A stretch of 64,000 nt of DNA from Octopus sinensis (lineage: Eukaryota): positions 11,036,001 through 11,100,000 of the forward strand of contig NC_043023.1 in NCBI RefSeq assembly GCF_006345805.1, given 5' to 3'. Shown piece after piece: positions 5,846 to 57,868 of this stretch (within the stretch, counting starts at the first letter, position 1; each line of letters starts with the position of its first letter). The position numbers and the translations under genes were made by a program. The notes below the pieces were generated by a model. That model did no database searches. It had not been told where the DNA came from and saw nothing but the letters and a program-made list of their open reading frames with translations.

Positions 5846-5957
5846 AAATGTAAAGATCCTGAAAACATTTACTTTACCAACCGCACATCTATTTTAATCA
5901 GGGCGTAAATCTTTTCAACAAATAAAGCTATTCATTGTAATATTTTTCTGGCACTTA

Positions 5958-6358
5958 TACTCTTTACTCTTTTACTTGTTTCAGTCATTTGACTGCGGCG
6001 ATGCTGGAGCACTGCCTTTAGTCGAGCAACTCGACCCCGGAACTTATTCTTTGTAAGCCTAGGACTTATTCTATCGGTCTCTTTTGCTGAACCGCTAAGT
6101 GACAGGGACATAAACACACCAGCATCGGTTGTCAAGCAATGCTAGGGGGACAAACATATACACACACATACATATATGTATATTTATACATATATGCGAC
6201 AGGCTTCTTTCAGTTTCCGTCTACCAAATCCACTCACAAGGCATTGGTCGGCCCGAGGCTATAGTAGAAGACACTTGCCCAAGGTGCCACGCAGTGGGAC
6301 TGAACCCGGAACCATGTGGTTGGGAAGCAAGCTACTTACCACACAGCCACTCCTGCGC

Positions 6359-6390
<32 letters not shown>

Positions 6391-6495
6391 ATATATATAT
6401 ATATACAATGGGCTTCTTTCAGTTTTTGTCTACCAAATCCACTCTGGTCGTGACACCTTGGGCAAGCTACTTACCACACAGTCACTCCTGCGCTT
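5958..6495 (-). mobile_element. SINE family 2 plus an extra partial head
   Basis: (tactct)n tail on the + strand; tRNA-like head ggagtggctgtgtggtaag...gggttcagtccc on the - strand. Confidence 0.8.
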
Positions 6496-6662
6496 ATGTT
6501 TCTTATTTAATATCTCCTCCAGTCCCATTGTCACCAAATGTATTCAGTGTGTAATTGTATTCATTTATTCAAGCGTGAAATTCGTTTGCAATTTTATTGC
6601 CTGAAAAGTCCAATTCAATTCAGTAACTATGAGTAAGCAAATCATATAACCTTGAAAAACAA

Positions 6663-7084
6663 TATGACACACACACACATACTTATATTTACATGCACAT
6701 ACATGTTTGCATATACACAGATACACACACACACACATATATATATATATACAAATATATAAATATACATATATATCTATATATATATACACATATATAT
6801 ATGTATATATACACACTCAGATACACACACACATATATATATACATACATTCATATATATATATACACACACATATATGCATATATATATATATATATAT
6901 TTCTTATTATACACATATGCATGGCCACAGCTCGTGAGCTGAAACTAGATAAAATAAAATTTTAAAAAATATATATATGTGTATGTGAGTGTGTATACAT
7001 ATATATAGATATATATATAAATATATATGTATATTTATATATATACTTATATATAAGTATATATTTATATATATATACATGTAT

Positions 7085-7127
<43 letters not shown>

Positions 7128-7200
7128 GACACATATATATATGTATACATAGTTTCTGCTCGCTGGGGCATGCATATGTGTATATATATATATATATATA
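6663..7200. repeat. Complex (TA)n/(CA)n microsatellite
   Basis: Visible dinucleotide runs. Confidence 0.9.
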
Positions 7201-9731
7201 GAAGTAGTTGATAGCTTCCGCTACCTAGGAGACCAAGTCAGTAGCAGGGGTGGGTGTGCTGAAAGTGTAACTGCTAGAGTAAGAATGGCCTGGGCAAAGT
7301 TTAGAGAGCTCTTACCCCTGCTGGTGACAAAAGGCCTCTCGCTAAGAGTAAAAGGCAGACTATATGATGCGTGTGTACGTACAGCCATGCTACATGGTAG
7401 TGAAACATGGGCCGTGACAGCTGAGGATATGCGTAAGCTTGCAAGAAATGAAACCAGTATGCTCCGATGGATGTGTAATGTCAGTGTTCATAATCGTCAG
7501 AGTGTAAGTACTTTGAGAGAAAAGTTGAACCTAAGAAGTGTCAGTTGTGGTGTGCAAGAGAGACGGCTGCGCTGGTATGGTCATGTGACGAGAATGGCTG
7601 AAGATAGTTATGTGCAAAAGTGCTACACCCTAGCAGTTGAGGGAACCTGTGGAAGAGGTAGACCCAGGAAAACCTGGGACGAGGTGGTGAAGCACGACCT
7701 TCGAACTTTAGGTCTCACCAAGGAAATGACTGAAGACCGAGTCCTATGGAAGTGTGCTGTGCATGAGAGGACCCGGCAGGACTAGTCAGGCCATATCCCG
7801 TGGCCCCTACCTGGGACGTAGTTGATCCACCTGTGCATACCTTCCTTCTTGTGACACTTGTGAAGACCTGCTGAGGCAAGTGAAAATCAATCAAAATAGA
7901 TGAACATCAATGGAATTTGTATCTTTGTGGTACCAGTGCCTGTGGCACACAAGAAAACCATCCGAACGTGGCCGTAGCCAGTACCGCATCGACTCGCCTC
8001 CGTGCTATGGGAACATGGTGGCACATAAAAACACCATCCGAAGACCCGGCAAGACTAGTCAGGTCATAACCCGTGGGCCCTACCTTGGGACGTAGTCAGT
8101 CCACCTGTATATACCTTCCTTCTTGTGACACTTGTGAAGACCTGTTGAGGCAAGTGAAAATCAAAACAAATCAAAATAGATGAACATCAATGGAACTTGT
8201 ATCTTTGTGGTACCAGTGCCAGTGGCACTCAAGAATCCATCCGAACGTGGCCGTAGTCAGTACCGCTTGTGGCACCAGTGCCGGTGGCACACAAGAATCC
8301 ATCCGAACGTGGCCGTAGTCAGTACCGCATCACTGGCCATCGTGCTGTGGGCACATAACAAACACCATCCGGTCGTGGCCGTTCGCCAGCCTCATCTGGC
8401 ACCTGTGTCGGTGGCACATAAAAACACCATCCGAAGACCCGGCAAGACTAGTCAGGCCATAACCCATGGCCCCTACCTGGGACGTAGTCAGTCCACCTGT
8501 GCATACCTTCCTTCTTGTGACACTTGTGAAGACCTGTTGAGGCAAGTGAAAATCAAAATCAAAACAAATCAAAATAGATGAACATCAATGGAATCTGTAT
8601 CTTTGTGGTACCAGTGCCGGTGGCACACACTTTGTGGTACCGGTGCCGGTGGCACACAAGAGAACCATCCGAACGTGGCCGTAGCCAGTTCCGCATCGAC
8701 TGGCCTCCGTGCTGTGGGCACGTAACAAACACCATCCGATCATGGCCGTTCGCCAGCCTCATCTGGCACCTGTGTCGGTGGCACATAAAAACACCTTCCG
8801 AAGACCCGGCAAGACTAGTCAGTCCACCTGTGCATACCTTCCTTCTTGTGACACTTGTGAAGACCGGTTGAGGCAAGTGAAAATCAAATCAAATCAAATC
8901 AAATCAAAATAGACAAAATAGATGAACATCAATGGAATTTGTATCTTGTGGTACCAGTGCCGGTGGCACACAAGAAATCCATCAGTGCTGTAGTCAGTGC
9001 GGTGGGCACATGACAAACACCATCCGATCGTAGCCGTTCGCCAGCCTCATCTAGCACCTGTGTCGGTGGCACATAAAAACACCATCCGAAGACCCGGCAA
9101 GACTAGTCAGGCCATAACCCATGGCCCCTACCTGGGACGTAGTCAGTCCACCTGTGCATACCTTCCTTCTTGTGACACTTGTGAAGACCTGTTGAGGCAA
9201 GTGAAAATCAAAACAAATCAAAATAGATGAACATCAATGGAATTTGTATCTTTGTGGTACCAGTGCCGGTGGCACACACTTTGTGGTACCGGTGCCGGTG
9301 GCACACAAGAGAACCATCCGAACGTGGCCGTAGCCAGTACCGCATCGACTGGCCTCCGTGCTGTGGGCACGTAACAAGCACCATCCGATCGTCGCCGTTT
9401 GCCAGCCTCATCTGGCACCTGTGTCGGTGGCACATAAAAACACCATCCGAGCGTGGCCGTCTGCCAGCCTCGTCTGGCACCTGTGTCGGTGGCACATAAA
9501 AAACACCATCCGAGCGTGGCTGTTTGCCAGCCTCGTCTGGCACCTGTGTCGGTGGCACATAAAATCACCCACTACACTCTCGGAGTGGTTGGCGTTAGGA
9601 AGGGCATCCAGCTGTAGAAACACTGCCAGATCTGACTGGACTGGTGCAGCCTTCGGGCTCCCCAGACCCCAGTTGAACCGTCCAACCCATGCTAGCATGG
9701 AAAGCGGACGTTAAATGATGATGATGATGAT
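7201..9731 (+). mobile_element. 5'-truncated RTE-clade LINE: RT C-terminus (7201-7785) plus internally amplified 3'UTR and (GAT)n tail
   Basis: Frame open from 7201: EVVDSFRYLG..AWAKFRELLPLL..KGRLYDACVRTAMLHGSETW..RRLRWYGHV..GRGRPRKTW. The UTR module starting gacccggcaagactagtcag recurs about 5 times (~7770, 8043, 8436, 8802, 9090). Confidence 0.9.
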
Positions 9732-10130
9732 GATGATATATATATATATATGCATATATATGTGTATGTATATGTGTGTATATATTATGTATGTATATAT
9801 GTGTGTGTGTATATATATATGGGTGTGTGTGTATATATATAGATATATATGTATATTTATATATTTGTATATATATATATGTGTGTGTGTATATATATAT
9901 GGGTGTGTGTGTATATATATGGGTGTGTGTGTATATATATAGATATATATGTATATTTATATATTTGTATATATATATATATATGTGTGTGTACGTGCGT
10001 ATATGTATGCATGTGCATGTAAATATATGTATATGTGTTTGTGTCACATGTTATTTATATATATACATATATACATAGATATATATAGAGCGACATATAC
10101 ATACACACACACATATATATATATGCATAT
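9732..10130. repeat. Complex (TA)n/(TG)n microsatellite
   Basis: Visible dinucleotide runs. Confidence 0.9.
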
Positions 10131-10504
10131 CACGTGATCACGTGACCGACCAGACCATCAGATGTTTTACGCATCGCCGGTCACAATGCGTTCGCTGGCT
10201 AAGCGAGCAGGCCAACAGAAGAAAGAGAGAAAGAGTGGTGAAAGAGTACAGCAGGGATCACCACCCCCTGCACGCGCCCACGCAGACCAGTCTGCGCATG
10301 TCATCGTTCTTCTGCCTTCCACACCAATTCAGATCACACCCGTAGAAGAAATGGTTTCGTCCAACTCCTGCTCTTGCAAAAGTTCGGAAAAACTGGCCCT
10401 CATCCCGAAGTATAGAAATACAAGGTAAAACTGAAACTTGGTTTTCTTTTTCTTTTCACTTTGTTCCTGTTTTATACAACCATTTCCTTATATAATGCTT
10501 ACGA

Positions 10505-10912
10505 TAAGGTGGCGAACTTAATCCGTTTGTCTGTCCTTGTCTGTCCCCTTTGTGTTTAGCCCCTTGTGGGTAGTTAAGAAATATATATAATGTTTACGAT
10601 AAGGTGGCGAACTCGCAGAAACGTTAGCACGCCGGGCGAAATGCGTAGCCGTATTTCGTCTGCCGTTACGTTCTGAGTTCAAATTCCGCCGAGGTCGACT
10701 TTGCCTTTCATCCTTTCGGGGGTCGATAAATTAAGTACCAGTTACGCACAGGGGTCGATGTCATCGACTTAATCCGTTTGTCTGTCTTTGTTTGTCCTCT
10801 CTGTGTTTAGCCCCTTGTGGGTAGTAAAGAAATAGGTATTTCGTCTGCCGCTACGTTCTGAGTTCAACCTTGTTTGTCCCCTCTGTGGATAGTAAAGAAA
10901 TATATAATGTTT
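10505..10912 (+). mobile_element. SINE family 1 cluster (partial, full, partial)
   Basis: Same head and body as 4641; tataatg(c/t)ttacga is repeated three times as a TSD-like flank. Confidence 0.8.
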
Positions 10913-10913
10913 A

Positions 10914-11126
10914 CGAGGGGTGCAGAAAAGTTCCTGGCTTTGGGTAAAAGGAAATGCGCGAGGATCAGTTAATGATGATTCAATTCAACATGTTCCCCTC
11001 TCAGATTCACATAATAACTGCAGTGGTCCTTCAGTTTTTCTAAGTTCTATAAAAGAACACGGAACGTTAAGCCTCAAACGAGGCCTTTGACAACCCTTAA
11101 ATAAAGGAAATTTTCTGCACCCCTGT
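10914..11126. mobile_element. Tc1/mariner-like MITE
   Basis: tacgaggggtgcagaaaagttcc ... ggaaattttctgcacccctg terminal inverted repeats (TIRs). Confidence 0.65.
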
Positions 11127-11155
11127 GGATTCCGATAGAATCATGTACTTAAAAG

Positions 11156-12928
11156 GGTTAATATAGGGCGTAACAAATATCAGAAAATCAAAAAAAAAAT
11201 GTGTGTAATAGGTGTAAAACAACTTCCTATGAACGAATATGAAAAAAAAAATTCGCGCACGCGAAAGGGGGGTGGGGGAGAGGCCTCGGAATATTTATAT
11301 CGGGAATTTCCGAAAGCGTCTGAACCGGGCACAAAAACAAAAACAAAAACAGCGTAATAGGTGTAAAACAACTTGCTCTAAACGACTATCATGAAAAAAA
11401 TGCGCGCTCGCGAAAGGGGGGTGGGGGAGAGGCTTCGGAAATTTCACATCTTCAGTCCACGGCCTTTAAACTAAGAAAAAATAGTGTAATTGGTGTAAAA
11501 CTACTTGTTCTAAACGAGTATCAAGAACACACACTCACACATGAATCATAAACTCCGTATTTCGCAAAAAAAAAAAATAAAGAGAAGAAATTCTGGAAAA
11601 AGTGAAGAAATGTTGGATCTCATTCCTTGGTTAAAGCTATTTTAAACATTAAATTTATGCTTTTCTTTGAAATAGTTCAGATATATGCAATTCTTCTCAC
11701 TTATTAAGATGCATTTATCAGAAAAAAAGAGACAGAAAAAATTATTATTTTGTGTCAATCCTTCCCTAATTATCCTTTATTAATTAGTTTTGGCGTGTAT
11801 TTTTTTCCCAAATTTATTTTTTCACCTTTACAACACTGTTTAGTAAAGCAATTAATTATCTTTATAATTTGCATATTTGACTTATTAATCAAAATTCTCT
11901 AGATGTAATATATACTAAGTAATGCATCCTTCATTTATGTGTTCCGTTCTGTATTATGCATGCGTGACTGTTTGTATGTAAGTGTGTTTAACTGTGCACA
12001 TGAATGTGAATATTAAAGAACATATTTATTTACTATGATTGTTATTTTCAGAACAAATAAATCTTTTGGCTGTTATGTTATTGATGTTATTATTATTGCT
12101 AGTTAAAGGGTGGTGACTTGGCTGAATATTTTGAGTCTTGTAGTATGTAGTTGTGTTAGTCAATATTCTGAGTTCAAATCCAACTCATTTCTTTATCATC
12201 ATTATCGATGGACCACTCAAAGAGGTATGTATACATTATCATTTTCGTAACATAATTTCTGTAGTATTTCAAGATGTTTCTGACACGTATTTTGATTCAC
12301 ATGGCGGAGATCCAACATTTCTTCACTTTTTCCAGAATTTCTTCTCTTTATTTTTTTTTTTTGCGAAATACGGAGTTTATGATTCATGTGTGAGTGTGTG
12401 TTCTTGATACTCGTTTAGAACAAGTAGTTTTACACCAATTACACTATTTTTTCTTAGTTTAAAGGCCGTGGACTGAAGATGTGAAATTTCCGAAGCCTCT
12501 CCCCCACCCCCCTTTCGCGAGCGCGCATTTTTTTCATGATAGTCGTTTAGAGCAAGTTGTTTTACACCTATTACGCTGTTTTTGTTTTTGTTTTTGTGCC
12601 CGGTTCAGACGCTTTCGGAAATTCCCGATATAAATATTCCGAGGCCTCTCCCCCACCCCTCTTTCGCGAGAGCGCATTTTTTTTTGTCATATTCGTTTAG
12701 AGCAAGTTGTTTTACACATATTACACTATTTTTTTTTGTTTTGGTGCCCGGGTCAGCTCCTCAGACGCTTTCGGAACTTCCCGATGTGAATTTTCCGAGG
12801 CCTCTCCCCCACCCCCCTTTCGCGTGCGCGAATTTTTTTTTTCATATTCGTTCATAGGAAGTTGTTTTACACCTATTACACACATTTTTTTTTTGATTTT
12901 CTGATATTTGTTACGCCCCATATTAACC
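11156..12928. mobile_element. Long-TIR (foldback-like) non-autonomous DNA element, copy A, 8-bp TSD CTTAAAAG
   Basis: Termini GGTTAATATAGGGCG..CGCCCCATATTAACC; TSD at 11148-11155 and 12929-12936; inverted arms ~11156-11620 and ~12308-12928 around an AT-rich spacer. Confidence 0.9.
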
Positions 12929-13333
12929 CTTAAAAGATATGCACTGGTAGAGTTAAGAGTGAAGGTGAATAATATGCGCGCTCAGTATTTAAGGTTAGGG
13001 TTTCGCCGAAAACGGGTGGTGTGCGTATTCTTTACCTCCGACAGGGTTGAGTAATGTCTGAGGTTTCGGTCAATGGCTGGTTGGAGTCAAGATATTAGGT
13101 AGTATATCTCGACTTTACACACAGAGAAAAACTAACCCTACGAGTATTTAGCGCCCGAGGGGCTTGCCCACCTTACACCTTACTTTAAATAATACGTTGT
13201 GGGTATAGGGCAGTTTCCAGAAGAAAAAAAAAAGTAATATAAAATGCTTATGTATTTGTATTATTTGTCTATAAAATAAATATAAGATTTTAAAATGTCA
13301 GCTTTTATTATATTCGTTATATATATTGTGAGT

Positions 13334-13538
13334 TATACTAGCCATCTCAAAATGTCTAACCACTAAGGGTGGGTGTTACTGTAGCTTGTATCCCCAGGAG
13401 AACATCGTCTCCAGCTGGCTTTAGGCACACTTTCTGTGCCCTTATGCCTAAAGCCAGCTGGAGACGATGTTCTCCTGGGGCTACAAGCTACAGTAACACC
13501 CACCCTTAGTGGTTAGCCATATTGAGATGGCTAGTATA
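13334..13538. mobile_element. Near-perfect ~205-bp hairpin MITE (duplicate at 27776-27980)
   Basis: tatactagccatctcaa...ttgagatggctagtata; arms of ~90 bp. Confidence 0.85.
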
Positions 13539-14388
13539 CCTCACATTGTCGTGCAGTTTACTGTTTACACCTCGTTCAGAGATTTATTATTGTTATATAT
13601 ATTATTACCGGTATAAATGAATATTACTAATCCCTGGCACATTGGGGGGAAAAAAAAGGAACTGCCTCTAGATAGTTTAGGAAGCACTATTCTAGGGTGT
13701 CCTAACAGGTTTTAGATTCCAATTGGTGAAAAGGTCACAGCCATCTTGGGTTTTTTCATTTACTTCGATTGTACATATAACACAGGACTCTTTCAGTTTC
13801 TGTCTTCCAAATCCACTCACAGGCTTTCGTCGACGAGGGGCTATAGTAGAAAATACTTGCCCAAGATTCCACCGTGGGACTGAGGCAGGACCGTGTTGTT
13901 GAAAAGCAAGAGTCTTACCACAGGGCCACGCCCTTGTATTAAACGATTTCAAAATATCACTGTTTGATTTGACCTCATTATTAAAAGGCGGCAAGTTAGC
14001 AGAAACGTTAGGGTGCAGGGCAAAATTCTGAGCGCCATTTCGTCTGTTTTTACGTTTTGAGTTCAAATGCTGCCGGAGGTTTCTTAGCCTCTCATTGTTC
14101 TAGTGTTGTTGAAATAAGTACTAGTTAATACTTATTTCTTTACGACAGACAAGGGGCTAAACACAGAGAGGACAAACAAGGACAGACAAACGGATTAAGT
14201 CGATTATTTCGACCCCAGTGCGTAACTGGTACTTAATTTATCGATCCCGAAAGGAAGACAGGCAAAGTCGACCTCGGCGGAATTTGAACTCAGAACGCAA
14301 CGGCAGACAAAATACGGCTACGCATTTCGCCCGGCGTGCTAACGTTTCTGCCAGCTCGCCGCCTCTTTGCCAGGGGCAATATAATCGA

Positions 14389-14710
14389 GGTACTACTAGC
14401 GAACAGTGGTCCCGTCCCGGTGGGTGCACACACGCAGTCGCGCCTCCGCGCTAGCTAGTCGTGACTAGTCGACCCTACAACGGCTACCTAGCAAAGTAAA
14501 TAAAACACAAAATAAATAATTTTTTTACACAAAGCAAATAATTTTTGTTAAACAAAGTAAATAAAACACAAAAACACGAAGTAAATAATTTTTTAATTAA
14601 AGTAAATAAAACGCAAAAACAAAGTAAGGATCGACTAGTCATGACTAGCTGGGTGCGGATGCGCGAGTACGCAAGAGCGCGCACCGGGACCACTGTTCGC
14701 TAGTAGTACC
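14389..14710. mobile_element. TIR MITE with GG..CC termini (duplicate at 28845-29166)
   Basis: GGTACTACTAGCGAACAGTGGTCCC ... GGGACCACTGTTCGCTAGTAGTACC, with an A-rich core. Confidence 0.85.
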
Positions 14711-15269
14711 TATTTCTTTATTACCCACAAGGGGCTACACACAGAGGGGACAAACAAGGACAGACATAGTTATTAAGTCGATTACATCAACCCAGTGCGT
14801 AACTGGTACTTATTTAATCGACCCCGAAAGGATGAAAGGCAAAGTCGACCTCGGCGGAATTTGAACTCAGAACGTAGCGCTAGTATTACCTATAATCTCC
14901 TCCCTGAAATTGCTGATCTTGTGCCAAAATTTTAAACCAGTATTACAACGGCCACGTTTCGTTTTGTAGTGTGGCCAAATGGCGGATGTGCGCACAATGA
15001 GTCCCACCCATTTGACTGACCTTTCCGGATTTGGTTTTTTATCCGGATTCCTATGCTTTCGAAGACGGTGATTCCGTCATCGAAAAACCATGTTTTCAAA
15101 ATTTTTAACCCCGCAATTTTTTATTTTAAACTTTTTTTCGAAATCTTTTTTTCAATCTACGTGAAAAAATACGGAGATTAAAAATATGGGAGGGGATGGG
15201 GAAAATAAATTTTGGCGATCCTTCGGTAAGTGGCTTAGTTTACATTTCTGAAGATAACAGAAACCCTTT

Positions 15270-15945
15270 TCTCCTAAACTTATCACAAACCCTAACCCTA
15301 ACCTTTTCCTTTTGAATGGCAGACAATTTCTAGTTAACTAAACACTTTAAAACTTCGTATACTGGTAGAATGTGTCAAAATAAAACATTTTTTTTTGTCT
15401 TGGCTCTCTTGAGAAAATTGTAATTTGTTTGTTTAACGTAGTTTAATTTTTCGAATTTAAACCAATCCTATGCTCTCTTTTCAGCTAAAATCATTTGCTG
15501 CATCTAAAACTGAGACAACATCCTGTAACTAACCCTAAACCTGCCCCCTAACCCTAATTTTTTTTTTTATTAATTGTTACGAGTGTAAAAAAAACTAAAG
15601 CAATGGGATTAAATTAACAATTAAGAAAAAAAATCTAGGGTTAGGGTTAGGGGGGAGGTTTAGGGTTAGTGACAGGATGTTGTCTCAGTTTTAGACGCAG
15701 CAAATGATTTTAGTTGAATGGAGGTAATCGATTGGTTAAAATTACCGAAATGCTCAGATTTTCAGACGAAATATCAAACAAACTATAGAATTTTCTCAAA
15801 GCCAAGAGAAAAAGATGTTTTATAAACACATTCTACCAGTATACGAAGTTTAAAAGTGTTTAGTTAACTAGAAATTGTGTTGACATCTGCCGTTCAAAAG
15901 GAAAAGATCCCCCTTTTCTCCTAACCCTAACACAAACCCTAACCC
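15270..15945. repeat. Foldback repeat containing TTAGGG/CCCTAA-like motifs (duplicate ~29730-30425)
   Basis: Arms ~15310-15560 and ~15630-15905 are reverse complements; short aaccct and agggtt runs. Confidence 0.75.
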
Positions 15946-17053
15946 CCCATATATAAAAAAAACAAACACTTTCTTGAAATGTATCCGGTACTTATAACGA
16001 AGTTACGCCCAAATTCTAATTGCAAATTTTTTTATGAAAAACTCCAAAATTTGTCCACTCCATCCCGCTGTTTAAAAGTGAAAATGAGCGAATGTTTTGT
16101 CCGTTTCTGCATGCGTTGATTTATGGTGAAAAACAGCAAAAGGACTATGGCACGTGAAGCCCTCACCACGAAACTCGATATGCTAAAAATAACAGCTTAA
16201 TGCCTTTTTTACTCTTTTACATGTTTCAGTCATGCTGGAGCACCGCCTTTAATCAAGCAACTCGACCCCGGGACTTATTCTTTTGTAAGCCCAGTACTTA
16301 TTCTATCGGTCTCTTTTGCCGAACCACTAAGTGATGGGGACATAAACACACCAGCATCAGTTGTCAAGCAATGCTAGGGGGACAAACACAGACACACAAA
16401 CACACACACTCATATATATATATATATACACATATATACGACAGGCTTCTTTCAGTTTCCGTCTACCAAATCCACTTACAAGGCATTCGTCGGCCTGAGG
16501 CTACAGTAGAAGACACTTGCCCAAGGTGCCACGCAATGGGACTGAACCTGGAACCATGTGGTTGGTTAGCAAGCTCCTTACCACACAGCCACTCCTGCGC
16601 CTGGAGAATTTTTGTGTTTGTGTGTATGTGTTTGACTGAGGACTGGCCAGCCAGTAGGCTGCACCAGGCTCCAATCTGATCTGGAAAGGTTTCTACAGCT
16701 GGATGCCCTTGCTAATGCCAACAACTCCCAGAGTATAGTGGGTGCTTTTTACTTGCCTCTGGCATGGGAGCCAGTCAGGCTGCACTGTATATTACTTATA
16801 CATGTGTGTGTGTGTGTGTGTGTAGATTTATATACATATGATGAGCTTTTTAAAAAATTGTTTTTGTTTATTTTTCTAGCGCCTGTCTTTGAAAAAAGAC
16901 ATGGCGTTTATTCAGATTATGAAGAAAATTATTCAAGGTGACATTGAATATGTTGAAAAATTTATTCAAGAAAATAAAGTAAGTTAAATTTTCTGATGTT
17001 TTGTCAGAATTGATTATTTGTATATTATTTTATACTTAGTATTAAGAGTTCCT

Positions 17054-17383
17054 GTGAAGGCACATGGCTCAGTGGTTAGAGCATCGAGCTTACAATCGTG
17101 AGGTTGTGAGTTCGAATCCCGGACCGGGCTGTATGTTGCAAGACACTTTATTTCACGCTGCTCCATTTAACTCAGCTGTAGAAATGAGTTGCGACATCAC
17201 AGGTGCCAAGCTGTATCGGCCCCTTTGTCTTTCCCTTGGATAACATCGGTTGTATGGAGAGGGGCAGCTGGTATACATGAGCGACTGCTGGCCTTCCATA
17301 AACAACCTTGGCTAGACTTGTACCTTGGAGGGTAACTTTCTAGGTGCAATCTCATGATCATTCATGACCGAAGGGGGTCTCCC
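17054..17383 (+). mobile_element. SINE family 4 (tRNA-derived head), 14-bp TSD (duplicate at 31529-31858)
   Basis: tggctcagtggttagagc ... gagttcgaatccc boxes; TSD tattaagagttcct at 17040-17053 and 17384-17397. Confidence 0.9.
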
Positions 17384-18319
17384 TATTAAGAGTTCCTAGG
17401 AGAGCAAGCTGGTAGAATTGTTTGCACATTGAGCACATTTTGTTCATCTTTGTCCTGAGTTCAAATTCCACCAAGGTTAGCTTTGCATTTATCCTTTCAG
17501 GGTTGATAAAATATATAACAATCAAGCTCTGGGGTCAATGTAATCTACTTGCTTCCTCCCCTGAAACTGCTGGCCTTGTGCCAAAATTTGAATCCAGTAT
17601 TTGGGGTTCTTAATTAATTGCATATATTTGTCTGTGATATTTTATTTGTCTTCAAATCTTACCTCTTCATCATTATTAGTTTTTATAAATTGTTAATGAA
17701 ACCTTGAGTCATGCCACAGTCGATGGAATGGGAGTGTGGAAGCTGGTCATCATATTCTGAGAGGAAATATTCAGTCAAAGAGATGAGAGCTAGATGGAAC
17801 CAATAGACAAGTTCCCCTGCCTCACACAGTTGAACGTTTTAAGAAATGTTCCATACTAAACATGAACCAATGACGAAATATATGGAATTCTAGCCTGGAG
17901 GGGGTTTTCGTATTAATTGTTTGGACTTTGTGAACACATACCAATTGTTTTTATAAGATTTTTAACGCTTTGAATTAAATGTGACCATTTTGCAAAGCCA
18001 GGCAATACTGCTAGTTGTGTATATATTTTTTCATTGTGTTGTATGGCATACTGAAAGATGTCTTGTACTCTTCTATATTTTAACATTCATCGATTTTCTC
18101 GCAGCTCAACATAGACAAACTTTCCATTATAGTCGTGGCATGCTATCTAGCAGAACAAGGTACAAACTTCTATCATCGAAACAACACCAATGCCACACCA
18201 CTTGATGTCTCTGAGGACACAAATTTAAAAGAGGAACTGAAAACATTTGTTTCAACTAGGTAAGTGATGTACTAAACCTTGCAAAATAAACCAGTGAGTT
18301 GTTGTGTCTTTTGTTTTTG

Positions 18320-20380
18320 TGCTTGAGAAAACCCGGCAAGCCAAATGAGACCATAACCTCATGGCCTATGCCAGGGGCAGAACCAGCCCACTTATGTGTA
18401 CCTTTCCTTCTTTGGACACTAAACTCTGCTTGCGAAGACCTGTTGAGGCAAGTGAAATCAAAATCAAATTCGATGACTGGCATCTGTGCTAGTGGGGCGT
18501 AAAGAGCACCATATTAGCGTGATCCTTGACACAGCAGCTAACTGGCTTCCGTGTCAGTGGCACATAAAAGGCACCATTCAAGCGTGATCTTACCAGTGTC
18601 GCCTTATTGGCACATGTAAAAACATTCGAGCGAGGTTGTTGCCAGTACCACCTGACTGGCGCCTGTGCCGGTGGCACGTAAAAGCACCCACTACACTCTC
18701 GGATTGGTTGGCGTTTGGAAGGGCATCCAGCTGTAGGAACTCTGCCAGATCAAGACTTGTTCTAAACGAGTATCAAGAACACACACTCACACATGAATCA
18801 TAAACTCCGTATTTCGCAAAAAAAAAAAATAAAGAGAAGAAATTCTGGAAAAAGTGAAGAAATGTTGGATCTCATTCCTTGGTTAAAGCTATTTTAAACA
18901 TTAAATTTATGCTTTTCTTTGAAATAGTTCAGATATATGCAATTCTTCTCACTTATTAAGATGCATTTATCAGAAAAAAAGAGACAGAAAAACTTATTAT
19001 TTTGTGTCAATCCTTCCCTAATTATCCTTTATTAATTAGTTTTGGCGTGTATTTTTTTCCCAAATTTATTTTTTCACCTTTACAACACTGTTTAGTAAAG
19101 CAATTAATTATCTTTATAATTTGCATATTTGACTTATTAATCAAAATTCTCTAGATGTAATATATACTAAGTAATGCATCCTTCATTTATGTGTTCCGTT
19201 CTGTATTATGCATGCGTGACTGTTTGTATGTAAGTGTGTTTAACTGTGCACATGAATGTGAATATTAAAGAACATATTTATTTACTATGATTGTTATTTT
19301 CAGAACAAATAAATCTTTTGGCTGTTATGTTATTGATGTTATTATTATTGCTAGTTAAAGGGTGGTGACTTGGCTGAATATTTTGAGTCTTGTAGTATGT
19401 AGTTGTGTTAGTCAATATTCTGAGTTCAAATCCAACTCATTTCTTTATCATCATTATCGATGGACCACTCAAAGAGGTATGTATACATTATCATTTTCGT
19501 AACATAATTTCTGTAGTATTTCAAGATGTTTCTGACACGTATTTTGATTCACATGGCGGAGATCCAACATTTCTTCACTTTTTCCAGAATTTCTTCTCTT
19601 TATTTTTTTTTTTTTGCGAAATACGGAGTTTATGATTCATGTGTGAGTGTGTGTTCTTGATACTCGTTTAGAACAAGTAGTTTTACACCAATTACACTAT
19701 TTTTTCTTAGTTTAAAGGCCGTGGACTGAAGATGTGAAATTTCCGAAGCCTCTCCCCCACCCCCCTTTCGCGAGCGCGCATTTTTTTCATGATAGTCGTT
19801 TAGAGCAAGTTGTTTTACACATATTACGCTGTTTTTGTTTTTGTTTTTGTGCCCGGTTCAGACGCTTTCGGAAATTCCCGATATAAATATTCCGAGGCCT
19901 CTCCCCCACCCCTCTTTCGCGAGAGCGCATTTTTTTTTGTCATATTCGTTTAGAGCAAGTTGTTTTACACATATTACACTATTTTTTTTTTGTTTTGGTG
20001 CCCGGGTCAGCTCCTCAGACGCTTTCGGAACTTCCCGATGTGAATTTTCCGAGGCCTCTCCCCCACCCCCCTTTCGCGTGCGCGAATTTTTTTTTTCATA
20101 TTCGTTCATAGGAAGTTGTTTTACACCTATTACACACATTTTTTTTTTGATTTTCTGATATTTGTTACGCCCTATATTAACCCTTAAAAGATATGCACTG
20201 GTAGAGTTAAGAGTGAAGGTGAATAATATGCGCGCTCAGTATTTAAGGTTAGGGTTTCGCCGAAAACGGGTGGTGTGTGTATTCTTTACCTGGTGCAGCC
20301 ATCTGGTTCGCCAGCCCTCAGTCAAATCGTCCAACCCATGCTAGCATAGAAAGCGGACGTTAAACGATGATGATGATGCT
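18320..20380 (+). mobile_element. RTE 3'UTR/VNTR element interrupted by a templated insertion
   Basis: Intact counterpart at ~32796-33330. Confidence 0.8.
18758..20288 (+). other. 1531-bp templated insertion copied from 11506-13034
   Basis: Constant ~7252-bp offset to the donor; absent from copy 2; ACT and CCT microhomologies at the junctions; 4 bp (ggag) lost. Confidence 0.9.
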
Positions 20381-20598
20381 TATTGTCACTTGTGCCAATA
20401 CATTTGTTACTGCTAATACTTCTTTCCATAACTCTACTGATTAAAGAAGGAACTGTGTTGGTATCTTGATTAAATAGAGGTCAGTGTGTGTATGTTGCTC
20501 CCCGTATTACCTTTAATGATCCATTTCCCTGATTAACATTGGAAGAGTGAAGAAATGCTGATAAATCAAGAGTCATCCATACAAGAAACAACAGTTAA

Positions 20599-21058
20599 CC
20601 CTTTTGATACAAATCCGGCTGTTCTCTGGCTCTGAGAACAAATGTCTTGTTTTCATAAGTTTTGAATTAAAGTCTTCCACCAAATCTTAATCACAATTTA
20701 TGTTCCTAACACTAGCTTAATGATAACTAAGTTATTTTACTAAATTCTTTGTCAAATAAAATTGAAAGAAACAGAGCATCGCGACAGAAATATGGTAACA
20801 AAAGGCTTAAAATATATAATAGAGAAACAATTCTTAACCCTTTTCATACCAACCTGGCTGAAACCAGCTCTGGCTCTGAGTACAAATGTCTTGTTTTCAT
20901 AAGTTCTGAATTAAAATCTTCCCACCAAACATCAATCACAATTTATGTTCCTAACACTAGTTTAATGATAACTAAGTTATTTTACTAAATTCTTTGTTAT
21001 ATTTAAAGCAATTGAAAGAAACAGAGAGCATCCCAAAATAAATACAGTAACGAAAGGA
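20599..21058. mobile_element. Two adjacent ~210-bp piggyBac-like MITEs (duplicate ~33548-34007)
   Basis: TTAA-CCCTTTT starts and AAAGG(G/C/A)-TTAA ends. Confidence 0.65.
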
Positions 21059-21416
21059 TTAAAATAAGGGATTGACAAAATCTAAGAGGGAACAGTAATG
21101 ATGGTACAAGTTGTTGTCCATCAAGCTTTAAGAAACAACGGAGCTAGCTTAATCTTTAATCACTGGATCACAAATCTATTTATAAATTACAACATTTCAA
21201 TGAGATCTACACAGAATCACATCTCCTCAAGTAATTATCAAAACCCCTGTTAATCATTATAGATCATCTTATTTCACTATTTGATTTGGATTACCTTTGT
21301 AGAATCTCTTTATTACTCTTTTATTTGTTTCTGTCATATGACTGTGGCCATGCTGGAGCACCGCCTTTGGTCAAGTTGCGCCGCAGGGTCTTGGAGGAGA
21401 TAGTGTTAGTTGAAGG

Positions 21417-21644
21417 TGGCGAGCTGGCAGAATCGTTAGCACAGTGGGCGAAATGCGTGGCCGTATTTCGTCTGCCGCTACGTTCTGAGTTCAAATTCCG
21501 CCGAGGTCGACTTTGCCTTTCATCCTTTCGGGTCGATTAAATAAGTACCAGTTATGCACTGGGGTCGATGTAATCAACTTAATCCGTTTGTCTGTCCTTG
21601 TTGGTCCCTTCTATGTTTAGCCCCTTGTGGATAGTAAAGAAATA
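21417..21644 (+). mobile_element. SINE family 1 monomer with 15-bp TSD
   Basis: TSD agtgttagttgaagg at 21402-21416 and 21645-21659. Confidence 0.9.
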
Positions 21645-22734
21645 AGTGTTAGTTGAAGGCTACCAAACCTGACACACACAGACGACTTCAGCTTTTTGTA
21701 TATATAGATTTCATCCCTAAGCAAGCATGTAATCGAGCCTAAATGGTTGAGTGTGTATGCATGGTCAAGAAGTTAAAGAGTTTGCTTCAGAATCCTGAAG
21801 GTCCTGGTTCAATTTTTAAAATACACTACATAAGATAGAGCAAGAGACAGTCTTCAGGAAAGTTGGGATAAAAAGTGTTAAAGTTCTACTTTTCTATCAC
21901 TTTTTCTAAAGAACATTTACTCTTACTCTTTACTATTTTTACTTGTTTCAGTCATTTGACTGCGGCCATGCTGGAGCACCGCCTTTAATCGAGCAACTCG
22001 ACACCGGGACTTATTCTTTTGTAAGCCCAGTACTTATTCTATCGGGCTCTTTTGCCGAACCGCTAAGTAACGGGGACATAAACACACCAGCATCGGTTGT
22101 CAAGCTATGCTAGGGGGACAAACACAAACACACAAACACACACACGCATATATATATATATACATATATACGACGGGCTTCTTTCAGTTTCCACCTACCA
22201 AATCCACTCACAAGGCATTGGTCAGCCCGGGGCTATAGCAGAAGACACTTGCCCAAGGTGCCACGCAGTAGGACTGAACCCGGAACCATGTGGTTGGTAA
22301 ACAAGCTACTTACCACACAACCACTTGACTAATTTTTTTGTGAATTGTCTGATTCTAATATTTCTAATAAAATATACAGACACGGAATTGTATATTTCTC
22401 ATTTCAGATGGATCCCAAGTTAATGTCATAGATTCCTGTCAGGTTCCCAGAGATGAATTTATGAGATTACAACTCAGAGAATAAACCAAATGTACAATAT
22501 GTCAGCAGAGACGTTGGAACATAGTCTTTCAATGTGGCCACGCCTCATGTAAAGAATGTGGAGAACAACTCAGTTATTGCCACATGTGTTGGTAACCTTT
22601 GAACAAAAGGATTGTTATATATTGACCATCTTTATTCTGGTTTTCTCTTTGCTTTATTGCTCGCCAATCTGAGAACTACCCCTGATCACATTAACCAGAC
22701 AGCCACGTCCACCCTGTATGAGTTGGAACTTTAA

Positions 22735-23318
22735 CCCCCTTACCCAACAATTATTTTGAAAATAAATGTATTTTTTCAGACATATTTTTTAATTGTTTTA
22801 TTTTACTATGTTTTGAATGGTGATTTTGAGGTATATTTCAAACCTTATTTATTATGAATTTTAATTCAATAATATTGATTTTAAATTACCGTTGTGGGCA
22901 GAAACGAGTTAACCGGTTTTTTTCATAAATCATATTACTTTTACAAAAAATCATGTTATTTTATTTGGTTATCGACATGGTGGGGTTATAATATAAAGGT
23001 ATAAAAAAAACAACGTAAAAACAAAGTGAATACTTCTATTCATAAAATGTGCCTTCCAACCCTTCGACTGTCTCCAGGTGACTAAATCATACTCGGTCTT
23101 CAATGCCTTACTCAAGCGAAAGGTGGCAGAAATCGTCACTGCCAGACGTATAAAGTGAGCGAATATACTCGTATATGTCAAAAACGAGTTTATAATAGAC
23201 AAAGGAACTCGTTTGCTGTCGATTTTGGCGAGTCTATCTTTTGACGAGTTAACTCGCCAGAGATAGAAAAAAACGATTTCGGTCAAAACGCATATATTCG
23301 TTTCTGCCGGGTAAGGGG
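22735..23318. mobile_element. piggyBac-like MITE (duplicate at 35676-36261)
   Basis: TTAA-CCCCTTACCC ... GGGTAAGGGG-TTAA. Confidence 0.8.
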
Positions 23319-23507
23319 TTAACACGTTTCTGAACATTTTTACCAAACAAGAGAAAACTAAGAATATTTTAACAATATCATGAAGATTAATAAACCATTT
23401 GTGCATTTGTATCCTGTTCTTTTATAGCATGCACAAATGTGTGTGCTATAAAAATCACAAATAATGAGCAAAATTTGAAGCAGGTCTCTTTTTTTATTTT
23501 TCGTTTG

Positions 23508-23940
23508 AAAATCAAAATCGAAATCAATCAACATCAATGGAAATTGTAGCTGTGATACCAGTGCCGGTGGCACATAAGAGGACCATCCAAACGTGGCTGT
23601 TGCCAGCACTGCCCCAACTGGCCTCCGTGCCGGTGGCACGTAAAAAGCACCATCCGATCGTGGCCGTTTGCCAGCCTCGTCTGGCACCTGTGCAGGTGGC
23701 ACGTAAAAAGCACCATCTGATTGGGGCCGTTTGCCAGCCTCGTCTGGCACCTGTGCAGGTGGCACGTAAAAAGCACCCACAACACTCACGGATTGGTTGG
23801 CGTTAGGAAGGGCATCCAGCTGTAGAAACACTGCCAGATCGAACTGGAGCCTGGCGCAGCCTTCTGGCTTCCCAGATCCCGGTCGAACCGTCCAACCCAT
23901 GCTAGCATGGAAAACGGACGTTAAACGATGATGATGATCG
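23508..23940 (+). mobile_element. RTE 3'UTR/VNTR element (duplicate ~36452-36946, one extra 63-bp unit)
   Basis: (AAATC)n, 63-bp units, terminal domain, (GAT)n tail. Confidence 0.8.
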
Positions 23941-24254
23941 TAATGATGCAGTTTCCCTCCTGTGAATATGTCAGTTTAGGTTCATGTAACTACTACAAGA
24001 TAAATTTACCACAGATGTACGATTTAGTGTACTCTCTTTACTCTTTTACTTGTTTCAGTCATTTGACTGCGGCCATGCTGGAGCACCACCTTTAATCGAG
24101 CAACTCGACCCCGGGACTTATTTTTTTGTAAGCCCAGTACTTATTCTATCGGTCTCTTTTGCCAAACCACTAAGTAACGGGGACATAAACACACCAGCAT
24201 CGATTGTCAAGCAATGCTAGGGGGACAAACACAGAAACACAAACACACACACTC

Positions 24255-24286
<32 letters not shown>

Positions 24287-24481
24287 ATATATATACGACG
24301 GGCTTCTTTTCAGTTTCCGTCTACCAAATCCACTCACAAGGCTTTGGTCGGCCCGAGGCAATAGTAGAAGACACTTGCCCAAGGTTCCACGCAGTGGGAC
24401 TGGACCCGGAACCATGTGGTTGGTAAACAAGCTACTTACCACACAGCCATGCCTGCGTACTGAATTTTGGTAGTGAAATGG

Positions 24482-25546
<1,065 letters not shown>

Positions 25547-25852
25547 TTTCCTTAGACATTAAATAAGTACCAGTTACGCACTGGAGTCGATATAATCGAC
25601 TTAATCCGTTTGTCTGTCCTTGTTTGTCCTCTTTGTGTTTAGCCCCTTGTGGCTAGTAAAGAAATAGGTATTACGAATCATTCCTCTTGCTGGGGGGGAA
25701 TTGTACTACACCTATCAGATATAGCTGATATAAAATACTCACAAATATCCATTGATTTTGTATCATAAATAAAAATTTTAGAATCTTAACACATTTAACA
25801 ATTCAACATTTTAAGCAAGATTTCAAAAAATAAAATAGATTTTATTCTTGTT

Positions 25853-26035
25853 ATCGTGACGTGTATTTGCCATTTAAATATAGCTAACCCCTAATAGGGG
25901 GTGCTACTGTAGTTTGTAGCCCCAGGAGGACGCCTCCTCCAGCTGGCTTTAGAGGTGTCCTCCTGGGGCTACAAACTACAGTAGCATCCACCCTTAGGGA
26001 TTAGCCATATTTAAATGGCAAATATACGTCACGAT
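25853..26035. mobile_element. Hairpin MITE related to 13334-13538 (duplicate at 38953-39136)
   Basis: atcgtgacgtgtatttgcc...ggcaaatatacgtcacgat; shared core ctgtag(c/t)ttgtagccccaggag..ctccagctggc. Confidence 0.8.
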
Positions 26036-26550
26036 GTGTTGCAGCTACTTTTCATAACTCGCTCTAAGATTTATTCTTCTTGTTACGTCTGTGCAGAAAT
26101 AAAGTACGTTTCGCCATTTCTAATTCCGAGTCAGTTTTTTTAATTGCTATTTTATTTCCTGTGGAATCGCACCTTCGTTATAAATTACACTGAATTAAAT
26201 GTTACAGCAGGTAAGATATGATGCATACTTTTAGTAAAGATCATTAAGGTGATCTTAAGTGTAAGTTTTTAATTGTCTGAATTACTAAATATTTAAACAT
26301 AGACTTAACACTATCACTTGTTCGTTATGGATACGTATACTATGTTTGTGATTACATATATGCATGTGTGCTCTACGATTGAATCTTGCCAATACCCACA
26401 AATACCTCATAAATCCTCCTTTGTTTTTATTTCGTTTTTTAGACGTTATAGTGTACTTTACGGAAGATTTGGCTGTTGTTTCTAGCAGTTCGGAAAATCA
26501 TGTAAAGGTTTCGTCTTTGCTGATTTCCATGACAACAGACAGTTCCGAAC

Positions 26551-27370
26551 GGTTAATATAGGGCGTTACGCCTATCAGAAAATCAAAAAAAAAATGTGTG
26601 TAATAGGTGTAAAACAACTTCCTATGAACGAATATGAAAAAAAAAATTCGCGCACGCGAAAGGGGGGTGGGGGAGAGGCCTCGGAAAATTCACATCGGGA
26701 AGTTCCGAAAGCGTCTGAGGGGCTGACCCGGGCACCAAAACAAACAAAAAATAGTGTAATATGTGTAAAACAACTTGCTCTAAACGAATATGACAAAAAA
26801 TGTACAAAAATACGGAGTTTATGATTCATGTGTGAGTGTGTGTTCTTGATACTCGTTTAGAACAAGTAGTTTTACACCAATTACACTATTTTTTCTTAGT
26901 TTAAAGGCCGTGGACTGAAGATGTGAAATTTCCGAAGCCTCTCCCCCACCCCCCTTTCGCGAGCGCGCATTTTTTTCATGATAGTCGTTTAGAGCAAGTT
27001 GTTTTACACCTATTACGCTGTTTTTGTTTTTGTTTTTGTGCCCGGTTCAGACGCTTTCGGAAATTCCCGATATAAATTTTCCGAGGCCTCTCCCCCACCC
27101 CTCTTTCGCGAGTGCGCATTTTTTTTTGTCATATTCGTTTAGAGCAAGTTGTTTTACACATATTACACTATTTTTTTTTGTTTTGGTGCCCGGGTCAGCC
27201 CCTCAGACGCTTTCGGAACTTCCCGATGTGAATTTTCCGAGGCCTCTCCCCCACCCCCCTTTCGCGTGCGCGAATTTTTTTTTTCATATTCGTTCATAGG
27301 AAGTTGTTTTACACCTATTACACACATTTTTTTTTTGATTTTCTGATATTTGTTACGCCCTATATTAACC
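26551..27370. mobile_element. Chimeric long-TIR element at the duplication junction (left flank of B, right flank of A)
   Basis: Left flank TTCCGAAC (26543-26550), right flank CTTAAAAG (27371-27378). Confidence 0.92.
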
Positions 27371-30300
27371 CTTAAAAGATATGCACTGGTAGAGTTAAGA
27401 GTGAAGGTGAATAATATGCGCGCTCAGTATTTAAGGTTAGGGTTTCGCCGAAAACGGGTGGTGTGCGTATTCTTTACCTCCGCCAGGGTTGAGTAATGTC
27501 TGAGGTTTCGGTCAATGGCTAGTTGGAGTCAAGATATTAGGTAGTATATCTCGACTTTACACACAGAGAAAAACTAATCCTACGAGTATTTAGCGCCCGA
27601 GGGGCTTGCCCACCTTACACCTTACTTTAAATAATACGTTGTGGGTATAGGGCAGTTTCCAGAAGAAAAAAAAAAGTAATATAAAATGCTTATGTATTTG
27701 TATTATTTGTCTATAAAATAAATATAAGATTTTAAAATGTCAGCTTTTATTATATTCGTTATATATATTGTGAGTTATACTAGCCATCTCAAAATGTCTA
27801 ACCACTAAGGGTGGGTGTTACTGTAGCTTGTAGCCCCAGGAGAACATCGTCTCCAGCTGGCTTTAGGCACACTTTCTGTGCCCTTATGCCTAAAGCCAGC
27901 TGGAGACGATGTTCTCCTGGGGCTACAAGCTACAGTAACACCCACCCTTAGTGGTTAGCCATATTGAGATGGCTAGTATACCTCACATTGTCGTGCAGTT
28001 TACTGTTTACACCTCGTTCAGAGATTTATTATTGTTATATATATTATTACCGGTATAAATGAATATTACTAAGAAATATTACCAATCCCTGGCACATTGG
28101 GGGGGAAAAAAAAGGAACTGCCTCTAGATAGTTTAGGAAGCACTATTCTAGGGTGTCCTAACAGGTTTTAGATTCCAATTGGTGAAAAGGTCACAGCCAT
28201 CTTGGGTTTTTTCATTTACTTCGATTGTACATATAACACAGGACTCTTTCAGTTTCTGTCTTCCAAATCCACTCACAGGCTTTCGTCGACGAGGGGCTAT
28301 AGTAGAAAATACTTGCCCAAGATTCCACCGTGGGACTGAGGCAGGACCGTGTTGTTGAAAAGCAAGAGTCTTACCACAGGGCCACGCCCTTGTATTAAAC
28401 GATTTCAAAATATCACTGTTTGATTTGACCTCATTATTAAAAGGCGGCAAGTTAGCAGAAACGTTAGGGTGCAGGGCAAAATTCTGAGCGCCATTTCGTC
28501 TGTTTTTACGTTTTGAGTTCAAATGCTGCCGGAGGTTTCTTAGCCTCTCATTGTTCTAGTGTTGTTGAAATAAGTACTAGTTAATACTTATTTCTTTACG
28601 ACCCACAAGGGGCTAAACACAGAGAGGACAAACAAGGACAGACAAACGGATTAAGTCGATTATTTCGACCCCAGTGCGTAACTGGTACTTAATTTATCGA
28701 TCCCGAAAGGAAGACAGGCAAAGTCGACCTCGGCGGAATTTGAACTCAGAACGCAACGGCAGACAAAATACGGCTACGCATTTCGCCCGGCGTGCTAACG
28801 TTTCTGCCAGCTCGCCGCCTCTTTGCCAGGGGCAATATAATCGAGGTACTACTAGCGAACAGTGGTCCCGTCCCGGTGGGTGCACACACGCAGTCGCGCC
28901 TCCGCGCTAGCTAGTCGTGACTAGTCGACCCTACAACGGCTACCTAGCAAAGTAAATAAAACACAAAATAAGTAATTTTTTTACACAAAGCAAATAATTT
29001 TTGTTAAACAAAGTAAATAAAACACAAAAACACGAAGTAAATAATTTTTTAATTAAAGTAAATAAAACGCAAAAACAAAGTAAGGATCGACTAGTCATGA
29101 CTAGCTGGGTGCGGATGCGCGAGTACGCAAGAGCGCGCACCGGGACCACTGTTCGCTAGTAGTACCTATTTCTTTATTACCCACAAGGGGCTACACACAG
29201 AGGGGACAAACAAGGACAGACATAGTTATTAAGTCGATTACATCAACCCAGTGCGTAACTGGTACTTATTTAATCGACCCCGAAAGGATGAAAGGCAAAG
29301 TCGACCTCGGCGGAATTTGAACTCAGAACGTAGCGCTAGTATTACCTATAATCTCCTCCCTGAAATTGCTGATCTTGTGCCAAAATTTTAAACCAGTATT
29401 ACAACGGCCACGTTTCGTTTTGTAGTGTGGCCAAATGGCGGATGTGCGCACAATGAGTCCCACCCATTTGACTGACCTTTCCGGATTTGGTTTTTTATCC
29501 GGATTCCTATGCTTTCGAAGACGGTGATTCCGTCATCGAAAAACCATGTTTTCAAAATTTTTAACCCCGCAATTTTTTATTTTAAACTTTTTTTCGAAAT
29601 CTTTTTTTCAATCTACGTGAAAAAATACAGAGATTAAAAATATGGGAGGGGATGGGGAAAATAAATTTTGGCGATCCTTCGGTATAAGTACCGTAAGTGG
29701 CTTAGTTTACATTTCTGAAGATAACAGAAACCCTTTTCTCCTAAACTTATCACAAACCCTAACCCTAACCTTTTCCTTTTGAATGGCAGACAATTTCTAG
29801 TTAACTAAACACTTTAAAACTTCGTATACTGGTAGAATGTGTCAAAATAAAACATTTTTTTTTGTCTTGGCTCTCTTGAGAAAATTGTAATTTGTTTGTT
29901 TAACATAGTTTAATTTTTCGAATTTAAACCAATCCTATGGCCTCTTTTGAGCTAAAATCATTTGCTGCGTCTAAAACTGAGACAACATCCTGTAACTAAC
30001 CCTAAACCTCCCCCCTAACCCTAAATTTTTTTTCTTAATGTTAACTTAATTCAATTGCTACGCGTGTAAAAAAATCTAAAGCAATGGAATTAAATTAATT
30101 TAACAATTAAGAAAAAAAATTTAGGGTTAGGGGGAGGTTTAGGGTTAGTTACAGGATGTTGTCTCAGTTTTAGACGCAGCAAATGATTTTAGTTGAATGG
30201 AGGTAATCGATTGGTTAAAATTACCGAAATGCTCAGATTTTCAGACGAAATATCAAACAAACTATAGAATTTTCTCAAAGCCAAGAGAAAAAGATGTTTT

Positions 30301-37261: not shown

Positions 37262-37294
<33 letters not shown>

Positions 37295-37497: not shown

Positions 37498-38646
<1,149 letters not shown>

Positions 38647-57834: not shown

Positions 57835-57868
<34 letters not shown>

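Follow-up and report, generated by a model that had tools for sequence, protein, structure and literature searches.

A 1.5-kb patch of foldback transposon and flanking DNA within a LINE tail of Octopus sinensis, probably copied in by microhomology-primed repair of a break

A LINE tail in the Octopus sinensis genome is interrupted by a 1.5-kb piece of DNA that was copied, in the same orientation, from a foldback transposon locus about 7 kb upstream, and we consider it probable that the piece was put there by microhomology-primed templated repair (ectopic SDSA) of a two-ended break, which would make it a repair-mediated duplication, or filler patch. The window, by which we mean the whole 64,000-nucleotide stretch that was analysed, is a zinc-finger gene cluster full of SINE and LINE fragments and hairpin repeats, and it contains no Ns. 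The two segments at the centre of the analysis are the following.

18758 to 20288, plus strand: the inserted patch, 1531 bp, a copy of 11506-13034
11506 to 13034, plus strand: the donor segment, 1529 bp, intact; its left side is continuous with the rest of the foldback element A and its right side with single-copy flank

Self-BLAST of the window aligned 11503-13037 with 18755-20291 on the plus strand at 99.61% identity over 1537 columns, in agreement with the first-pass annotation, which had read 18758-20288 as a same-orientation copy of 11506-13034 from ~7.25 kb upstream. In a base-by-base global alignment (1529 aligned bases), insert and donor differ by four substitutions (11741 A/C, 12568 C/A, 12919 C/T and 13024 C/T) and by two one-base differences in poly-T length. 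The donor begins 7252 bp upstream of the patch on the same chromosome and the same strand, outside the ad hoc "proximal" cut-off of 5 kb used by Pace et al. The window plus the 9.5 kb upstream of it holds one intact donor and this patch, and no further copy of the unit.

The donor segment overlaps a complete foldback transposon.

11156 to 12928, unstranded: foldback transposon "element A", 1773 bp, with arms at 11156-11621 and 12307-12928 and a 685-bp loop

Element A begins GGTTAATATAGGGCG... and ends ...ATATTAACC, its arms are composed of ~156-bp subrepeats, and it is flanked by an 8-bp TSD, CTTAAAAG, at 11148-55 and 12929-36. The patch carries the inner 116 bp of the left arm of A, the 685-bp loop, the entire right arm, the right TSD of A and 98 bp of the flank of A. 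Thus, the left end of the copied piece lies 350 bp inside the left arm, and its right end lies 106 bp past the right terminus (the TSD plus the 98 bp of flank). That flank is single-copy within the window. We also considered whether the right end of the patch could be the boundary of another repeat and rejected this, as 12929-13323 recurs in the window only as its paralogue in copy 2 of the duplication described below.

Both the donor and the acceptor are associated with a large repeat structure, R-X-R-X-R, in which R is the right arm of the foldback family (R1 12366-12928, R2 26808-27370 and R3 39909-40469). The interrupted tail lies in the first R-X unit, and its uninterrupted counterpart lies in the second.

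12366 to 27370, plus strand: copy 1 of the R-X unit, R1 + X1 + R2, which bears the insert
26808 to 40469, plus strand: copy 2 of the R-X unit, R2 + X2 + R3, in which the site is empty
18475 to 18757, plus strand: the LINE (RTE-like) 3' tail of copy 1, portion to the left of the interruption
20289 to 20386, plus strand: the LINE 3' tail of copy 1, portion to the right of the interruption, with (GAT)n at its end
33231 to 33240, plus strand: the empty (ancestral) site in copy 2, ACT-GGAG-CCT, with GGAG at 33234-33237, lost in copy 1

Neither R2 nor R3 served as the donor, in that both lack the 860-bp part comprising inner arm and loop, and the insert carries no R2-private variant. We trace the patch to the element A locus because this is the sole place where the loop occurs together with the flank.

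The polarity of the event follows from the family to which the interrupted tail belongs. Copy 2 reads caagACT-GGAG-CCTggtg across the site (33227-33243; in longer form ...GATCAAGACT-GGAG-CCTGGTGCA), and the LINE tail before the insertion was ...CAAGACTGGAGCCTGGTG... The host repeat is represented in the window by ten aligned copies (8 independent), which all continue through the site as ACTGGAGCCTGG, two with a gap of 1-2 nt, and which terminate in ...GGACGTTAAACGATGATGATG. Since ACTGGAGCCTGG is thus uninterrupted throughout the family, the ancestral state is the empty one and the change in copy 1 was an insertion; the opposite case, a deletion in copy 2, is ruled out by the consensus of the repeat family. 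The tail had already been described as intact in copy 2, and we see it intact both there and in the eight independent family members. At about 6.9-9.73 kb lies a longer member of the family, truncated at its 5' end, which encodes a peptide resembling the C-terminal part of a LINE reverse transcriptase, and the ORFs of that interval gave no match in Pfam. The earlier label "RTE" for the host repeat fits the (GAT)n end and the reverse-transcriptase-like peptide and is plausible on those two features, with no profile or database match to go with them.

At its two ends, the patch joins the tail through three shared nucleotides.

18755 to 18757, plus strand: left junction microhomology ACT, common to acceptor and donor (11503-11505)
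20289 to 20291, plus strand: right junction microhomology CCT, common to acceptor and donor (13035-13037)

With each join marked by a slash, the left junction reads ...caagACT/TGTTC in the acceptor and ...aactACT/TGTTC in the donor (over a longer span, ...GATCAAGACT/TGTTCTAAACG and ...AAAACTACT/TGTTCTAAACG). At the right junction, the donor reads ...TTTA/CCTccg and the acceptor ...TTTA/CCTggtg (longer, ...ATTCTTTA/CCTCCGACA and ...ATTCTTTA/CCTGGTGCA). Four nucleotides (GGAG) are missing from the acceptor site and nothing is duplicated. No TSD, TIR or poly-A is present at the patch ends, where ...AAGACT and CCTGGTG... flank an insert with ...GTATTCTTTA at its end. Base by base, this bears out the first-pass account of a shared ACT on the left, a shared CCT on the right, a loss of 4 bp and no TSD. 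In a simulation that drew random joins from the window's own sequence, a single junction reached at least 3 nt of microhomology in 6.0% of cases and both junctions of a pair did so in 0.37%, so the microhomology alone is meaningful but not overwhelming.

Exact look-ups with the two junction-spanning ORFs, and with two ORFs 2.7-3.6 kb downstream of the patch, returned no match, and a homology search with the right-junction ORF returned no candidate. When metagenome and prokaryote-genome collections were scanned for the exact patterns of the two junctions and of two element motifs, there was likewise no match, as expected for an animal locus.

The ends of the patch argue strongly against a mobile or RNA-mediated unit such as a transposon, a Helitron, or a LINE-driven retrocopy or transduction. 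The patch does hold transposon sequence and does sit in a LINE tail, but it is not bounded by the TIRs of the foldback family, and where that family makes 8-bp TSDs, 4 nt were lost here. The insert ends bear no 3' poly-A, no (GAT)n or other LINE tail repeat and no TSD, as a LINE retrocopy or 3' transduction would. The insert starts TGTTC and ends CTTTA rather than with the 5'-TC/CTRR-3' ends of a Helitron, and the host site is ACT/GGAG/CCT, not an A^T target. The piece also includes 98 bp of single-copy flank, and the window has the donor and this one copy only. Since neither patch end is a transposon end, the patch is not a transposition product; here we arrive, with agreeing coordinates, at the same view as the first-pass annotation, which had the piece starting in the left arm of A and running past TIR and TSD into flank. 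Mobility of the whole piece by any of these routes strikes us as extremely improbable.

What the locus does display is a known empty site with a derived insertion, microhomology together with deletion, and the absence of a TSD or a poly-A/T tail, which are features by which repair-mediated duplications are recognised. The first-pass annotation had proposed templated break repair or microhomology-mediated template switching, and the derived same-orientation copy, the 3-nt microhomologies and the 4-nt deletion uphold that proposal.

The start and end states are observed, and from them we infer the steps that followed the break. A two-ended chromosome break would have occurred in or beside GGAG in copy 1, and processing of the ends would have removed the 4 nt GGAG. 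One 3' end, either the top-strand ...ACT-3' or the bottom-strand ...AGG-3', would then have annealed by 3 nt to a transiently single-stranded template at the ectopic site 7.25 kb upstream, which may have been that of the same chromatid, of the sister or of the homologue. Once a polymerase had copied about 1.53 kb, the new strand would have been displaced and would have annealed through the second 3-nt microhomology to the end across the break, with fill-in and ligation completing the repair. The product would be a dispersed direct repeat of 1.5 kb, along with a second foldback that is truncated. The sequence fits priming from either end, and a template in cis as well as one on the sister or homologue. 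It counts against the SDSA model that 3-nt microhomologies are weak primers and that sequence alone cannot separate SDSA, MMBIR and end-joining capture of a fragment.

A replicative origin by FoSTeS/MMBIR is the alternative to weigh here: a fork would have stalled or collapsed in the LINE tail, and its nascent 3' end would have moved by microhomology to a template 7.25 kb behind, from which 1.5 kb was copied before a second switch returned it to the tail. This predicts the same junction signature as SDSA (microhomology at both joins, a same-orientation cis copy and a small deletion), the region is rich in hairpin-forming repeats able to stall forks, and MMBIR-linked templated insertions are documented (PMC8421209). 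However, a one-ended upstream invasion that continued would be expected to leave a 7.25-kb tandem duplication, the return to within 4 nt is more simply explained by a second end that was waiting there, and there are no extra switches, inversions or non-templated bases. We favour a two-ended break over a collapsed fork because the points of departure and return are only 4 nt apart, a spacing which suggests, though we only infer it, that both ends of one break were available. Two-ended SDSA-style repair is thus the favoured reading, with one-ended fork-collapse MMBIR its close rival, though an unlikely one.

The junctions are also compatible with capture of a fragment, in which a 1.5-kb piece of the foldback region (from sister or homologue) or an extrachromosomal circle was ligated into the break through microhomology-mediated end joining. 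DNA of the foldback or palindromic kind is known to break readily. Moreover, the capture of extrachromosomal DNA at breaks is documented in a passage of Pace et al. (PMC2671141). Against this, the donor is intact and scarless, so a second, perfectly repaired pair of breaks would be needed, and a re-opened circle is usually circularly permuted relative to its donor, whereas the insert is collinear. On balance, we judge capture to be quite improbable and keep templated repair of a two-ended break as the working explanation.

The surrounding duplication provides the empty site and also bears on when the patch arose. Two further foldback elements mark its structure.

26551 to 27370, unstranded: a hybrid foldback at the duplication joint that includes R2, with a B-type left arm and an A-type right arm
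39652 to 40469, unstranded: foldback "element B" (length 818 bp), related to A but with an internal deletion, which includes R3

Element B has a matched 8-bp TSD, TTCCGAAC, at 39644-51 and 40470-77. The flanks of the hybrid are mismatched, with the B-type TTCCGAAC on the left (26543-50) and the A-type CTTAAAAG on the right (27371-78), and the joint lies within 563 bp of homology between two foldback right arms. A chimeric element with mismatched TSDs is a classic mark of unequal homologous recombination between two elements. By this signature, the duplication of about 13-14 kb, which includes a zinc-finger-coding fragment, would have arisen by unequal recombination between two foldback elements, unless the assembler has stacked two haplotypes. 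Two haplotypes ~0.6% apart, stacked through the shared R repeat, could mimic a duplication; such stacking is possible because the divergence between the copies (0.55-0.72%) is below the heterozygosity of 1.22% reported for a sister species (bioRxiv 10.1101/2023.05.16.540928). If the haplotypes were stacked, the patch would be a heterozygous insertion and its interpretation would be unchanged.

Apart from the patch, copy 1 and copy 2 differ by 0.55-0.72% substitutions, small indels, one 63-bp unit and one 84-bp unit, and no other large structural change sets the two ~13-kb copies apart. At 24537 / 37553, copy 2 has exactly one extra 84-bp C2H2 zinc-finger unit, and at 23688 / 36631 it has one extra 63-bp unit of a LINE-tail subrepeat; both differences are changes in unit number by slippage or unequal exchange inside coding-type repeats. 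At 13629 / 28071, copy 2 has a 13-bp indel, AAGAAATATTACC, adjoining ...GAATATTACT. It resembles a short and imperfect duplication templated by the AATATTAC motif next to it and may be a miniature version of the repair process that we propose for the patch.

The duplicated unit also contains long self-complementary palindromes at 13327-13545 and 15323-15878 (paralogues 27769-27987 and 29790-30357), with 78-91% complementarity, which are probably MITE-like elements. These palindromes gave sub-threshold matches to plant miRNA-precursor models, only because they are hairpins. The region as a whole is unusually rich in hairpin-forming DNA.

To place the patch in time relative to the duplication, we compared the 669 bp over which donor, patch, R2 and (arm only) R3 align. 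At 12919, the donor alone has C, and patch, R2 and R3 have T, so that the patch has kept the ancestral T. Two changes are private to the patch, an A at the equivalent of 12568 and a T at the equivalent of 13024 (CpG to TpG). Of the three variants private to R2, the patch has none. The private changes over the 669 bp (donor 1, insert 2, R2 3) are star-like. By this comparison, the patch has evolved as a separate locus since it was copied, which argues against pasted-in donor reads. Because copy 2 is empty, the patch has to date from the duplication or later. The divergence between insert and donor (4/1529) is lower than that between copy 1 and copy 2 (65/10859) at a one-sided P of only 0.05-0.06, so the case for a clearly younger patch is marginal.

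The star-like pattern and the narrow divergence gap speak for another possibility, namely that the patch and the 13-14-kb duplication came from one multi-switch replicative rearrangement. The joint of the duplication, however, lies in its long homology and carries the mismatched-TSD hybrid, which points to homologous recombination and is unlike the 3-nt joins of the patch, and the point estimates suggest a patch about half the age of the duplication. We regard a single complex event as very improbable, and we continue to treat the patch as the outcome of its own episode of break repair.

An artefact of a long-read assembly that is heterozygous and rich in repeats, whether through a mis-join or through chimeric reads, has to be considered with the same data. 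The junctions rest on a single PacBio-based assembly, GCA_006345805.1, two of the six differences between insert and donor are homopolymer lengths, which are typical long-read errors, and the duplication around the patch could itself consist of stacked haplotypes, as described above. Yet 3 nt gives an assembler no overlap for connecting a LINE tail with the interior of a foldback arm, and it would have had to make such a connection twice. The substitutions look real, with the ancestral state at 12919 and the CpG to TpG change at 13024, and the two junctions together restore the LINE tail minus exactly 4 nt. An artefact is accordingly hard to credit, and a genuine repair patch is the reading that we carry forward.

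As far as tested, the patch has no function of its own. No tRNA was found in patch or donor, neither has an Rfam match at E <= 0.1, and the ORFs of the patch are short and low-complexity only, so that a functional RNA or gene within it was rejected as an explanation. As single-stranded DNA, 18758-19680 folds into a 116-bp stem with a 685-nt loop (dG -180 vs -72 kcal/mol for shuffles).

The known system that the patch resembles most is that of the repair-mediated duplications described in the human genome by Pace et al. (PMC2671141). More than 1,000 such events are known there, in each of which a TE is interrupted by sequence with one parental copy, and 824 of the donors lie within 5 kb; "microhomology + deletion" (MH+Del) is among the commonest breakpoint classes (PMC2671141). 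By its junctions, the octopus patch matches this MH+Del class (PMC2671141). As in the human cases, a TE with a known consensus is interrupted, a nearby donor on the same chromosome is intact, there is no poly-A or TSD, and microhomology (2-9 nt) is combined with a small deletion (1-15 nt), for which ectopic SDSA has been proposed. The octopus patch, at 1531 bp and from 7.25 kb away, exceeds the human proximal class (<5 kb; mean 162 bp, maximum 619 bp) but is within the range of the distant one (>5 kb or interchromosomal; maximum 3424 bp; PMC2671141). It differs further in its cephalopod host and in its donor, a foldback transposon plus flank.

Other templated processes are less close. The filler DNA ascribed to SDSA in plants (PMC4423477) is also a foreign genomic copy at a repaired break, often with deletion of flanking bases, but plant fillers at transposon excision footprints have a mean of 13 bp and a range of 1-123 bp (Roffler & Wicker 2015, PMC4423477), whereas the octopus patch is a hundred times longer and its acceptor shows no sign of a prior transposon. 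FoSTeS/MMBIR insertions share the junction microhomology and the templated copying from nearby; they start from a one-ended break or stalled fork and are often chained or inverted, unlike the simple two-junction patch with its 4-nt return. End joining that depends on polymerase theta (TMEJ) shares the use of microhomology, the small deletion and the templated extra sequence. The inserts left by TMEJ typically measure from a few nucleotides to tens of them and are copied from the immediate vicinity of the break, whereas the octopus insert is 1.5 kb and comes from 7 kb away. The patch reveals no new mechanism; it is an instance of a known mutation class, larger and somewhat more distant than typical, in a mollusc.

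Several other features of the cluster that houses the patch were recorded in the same survey of the window. An intact 526-aa C2H2 zinc-finger ORF at 490-2070 is recorded as a called gene (CM016885.1, GCA_006345805.1, the O. sinensis assembly of Li et al. 2020, as cited in bioRxiv 10.1101/2023.05.16.540928). An exact look-up matched this ORF in that assembly only, and the locus retrieved there is 100% identical to 1-12070 of the window. The end of the ORF, at 1640-2064, consists of 12.9 tandem copies of a 33-bp (11-aa) unit, an unusual C-terminal repeat after a finger array. Long C2H2 zinc-finger arrays at 41558-43845 (plus strand) and 49457-51324 (minus strand) are inverted relative to each other, about 6 kb apart and up to 90% identical; they contain an ORF of 563 aa with about 19 fingers (41987-43678) and one of 423 aa (49625-50896, minus strand), and the arrangement looks like an inverted gene duplication within the cluster. 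Two further pairs of inverted repeats, at 89-96% identity, comprise 4993-6798 with 56728-59014 (about 50 kb apart) and 53325-54513 with 61616-62853 (about 8 kb apart), and these could be TE copies or larger inverted segmental duplications.

A broader idea is that foldbacks are recurrent organisers of local structural change in the octopus, with their arms duplicating C2H2 zinc-finger segments by unequal recombination and their hairpin-prone, readily unwound DNA serving as a preferred template for kilobase-scale patches at breaks nearby. We think this doubtful, and its preferred-template part, which the first-pass annotation had also suggested and which would mean a systematic donor bias as opposed to a chance choice, rests on one event.

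For the annotation of TEs, the patch is a caution, in that a "foldback fragment" with foreign flank is not a transposition. It is a clean case of germline templated break repair in a cephalopod, with donor, acceptor and empty site all in one window, and it offers a starting case for surveying the octopus genome for patches of this kind. In this lineage, it shows, pieces of kilobase size can be moved by repair-mediated duplication, among them a transposon fragment along with the DNA that flanks it, and the new 1.5-kb direct repeats and the new hairpin that it has left behind can seed further rearrangement in the zinc-finger gene cluster.
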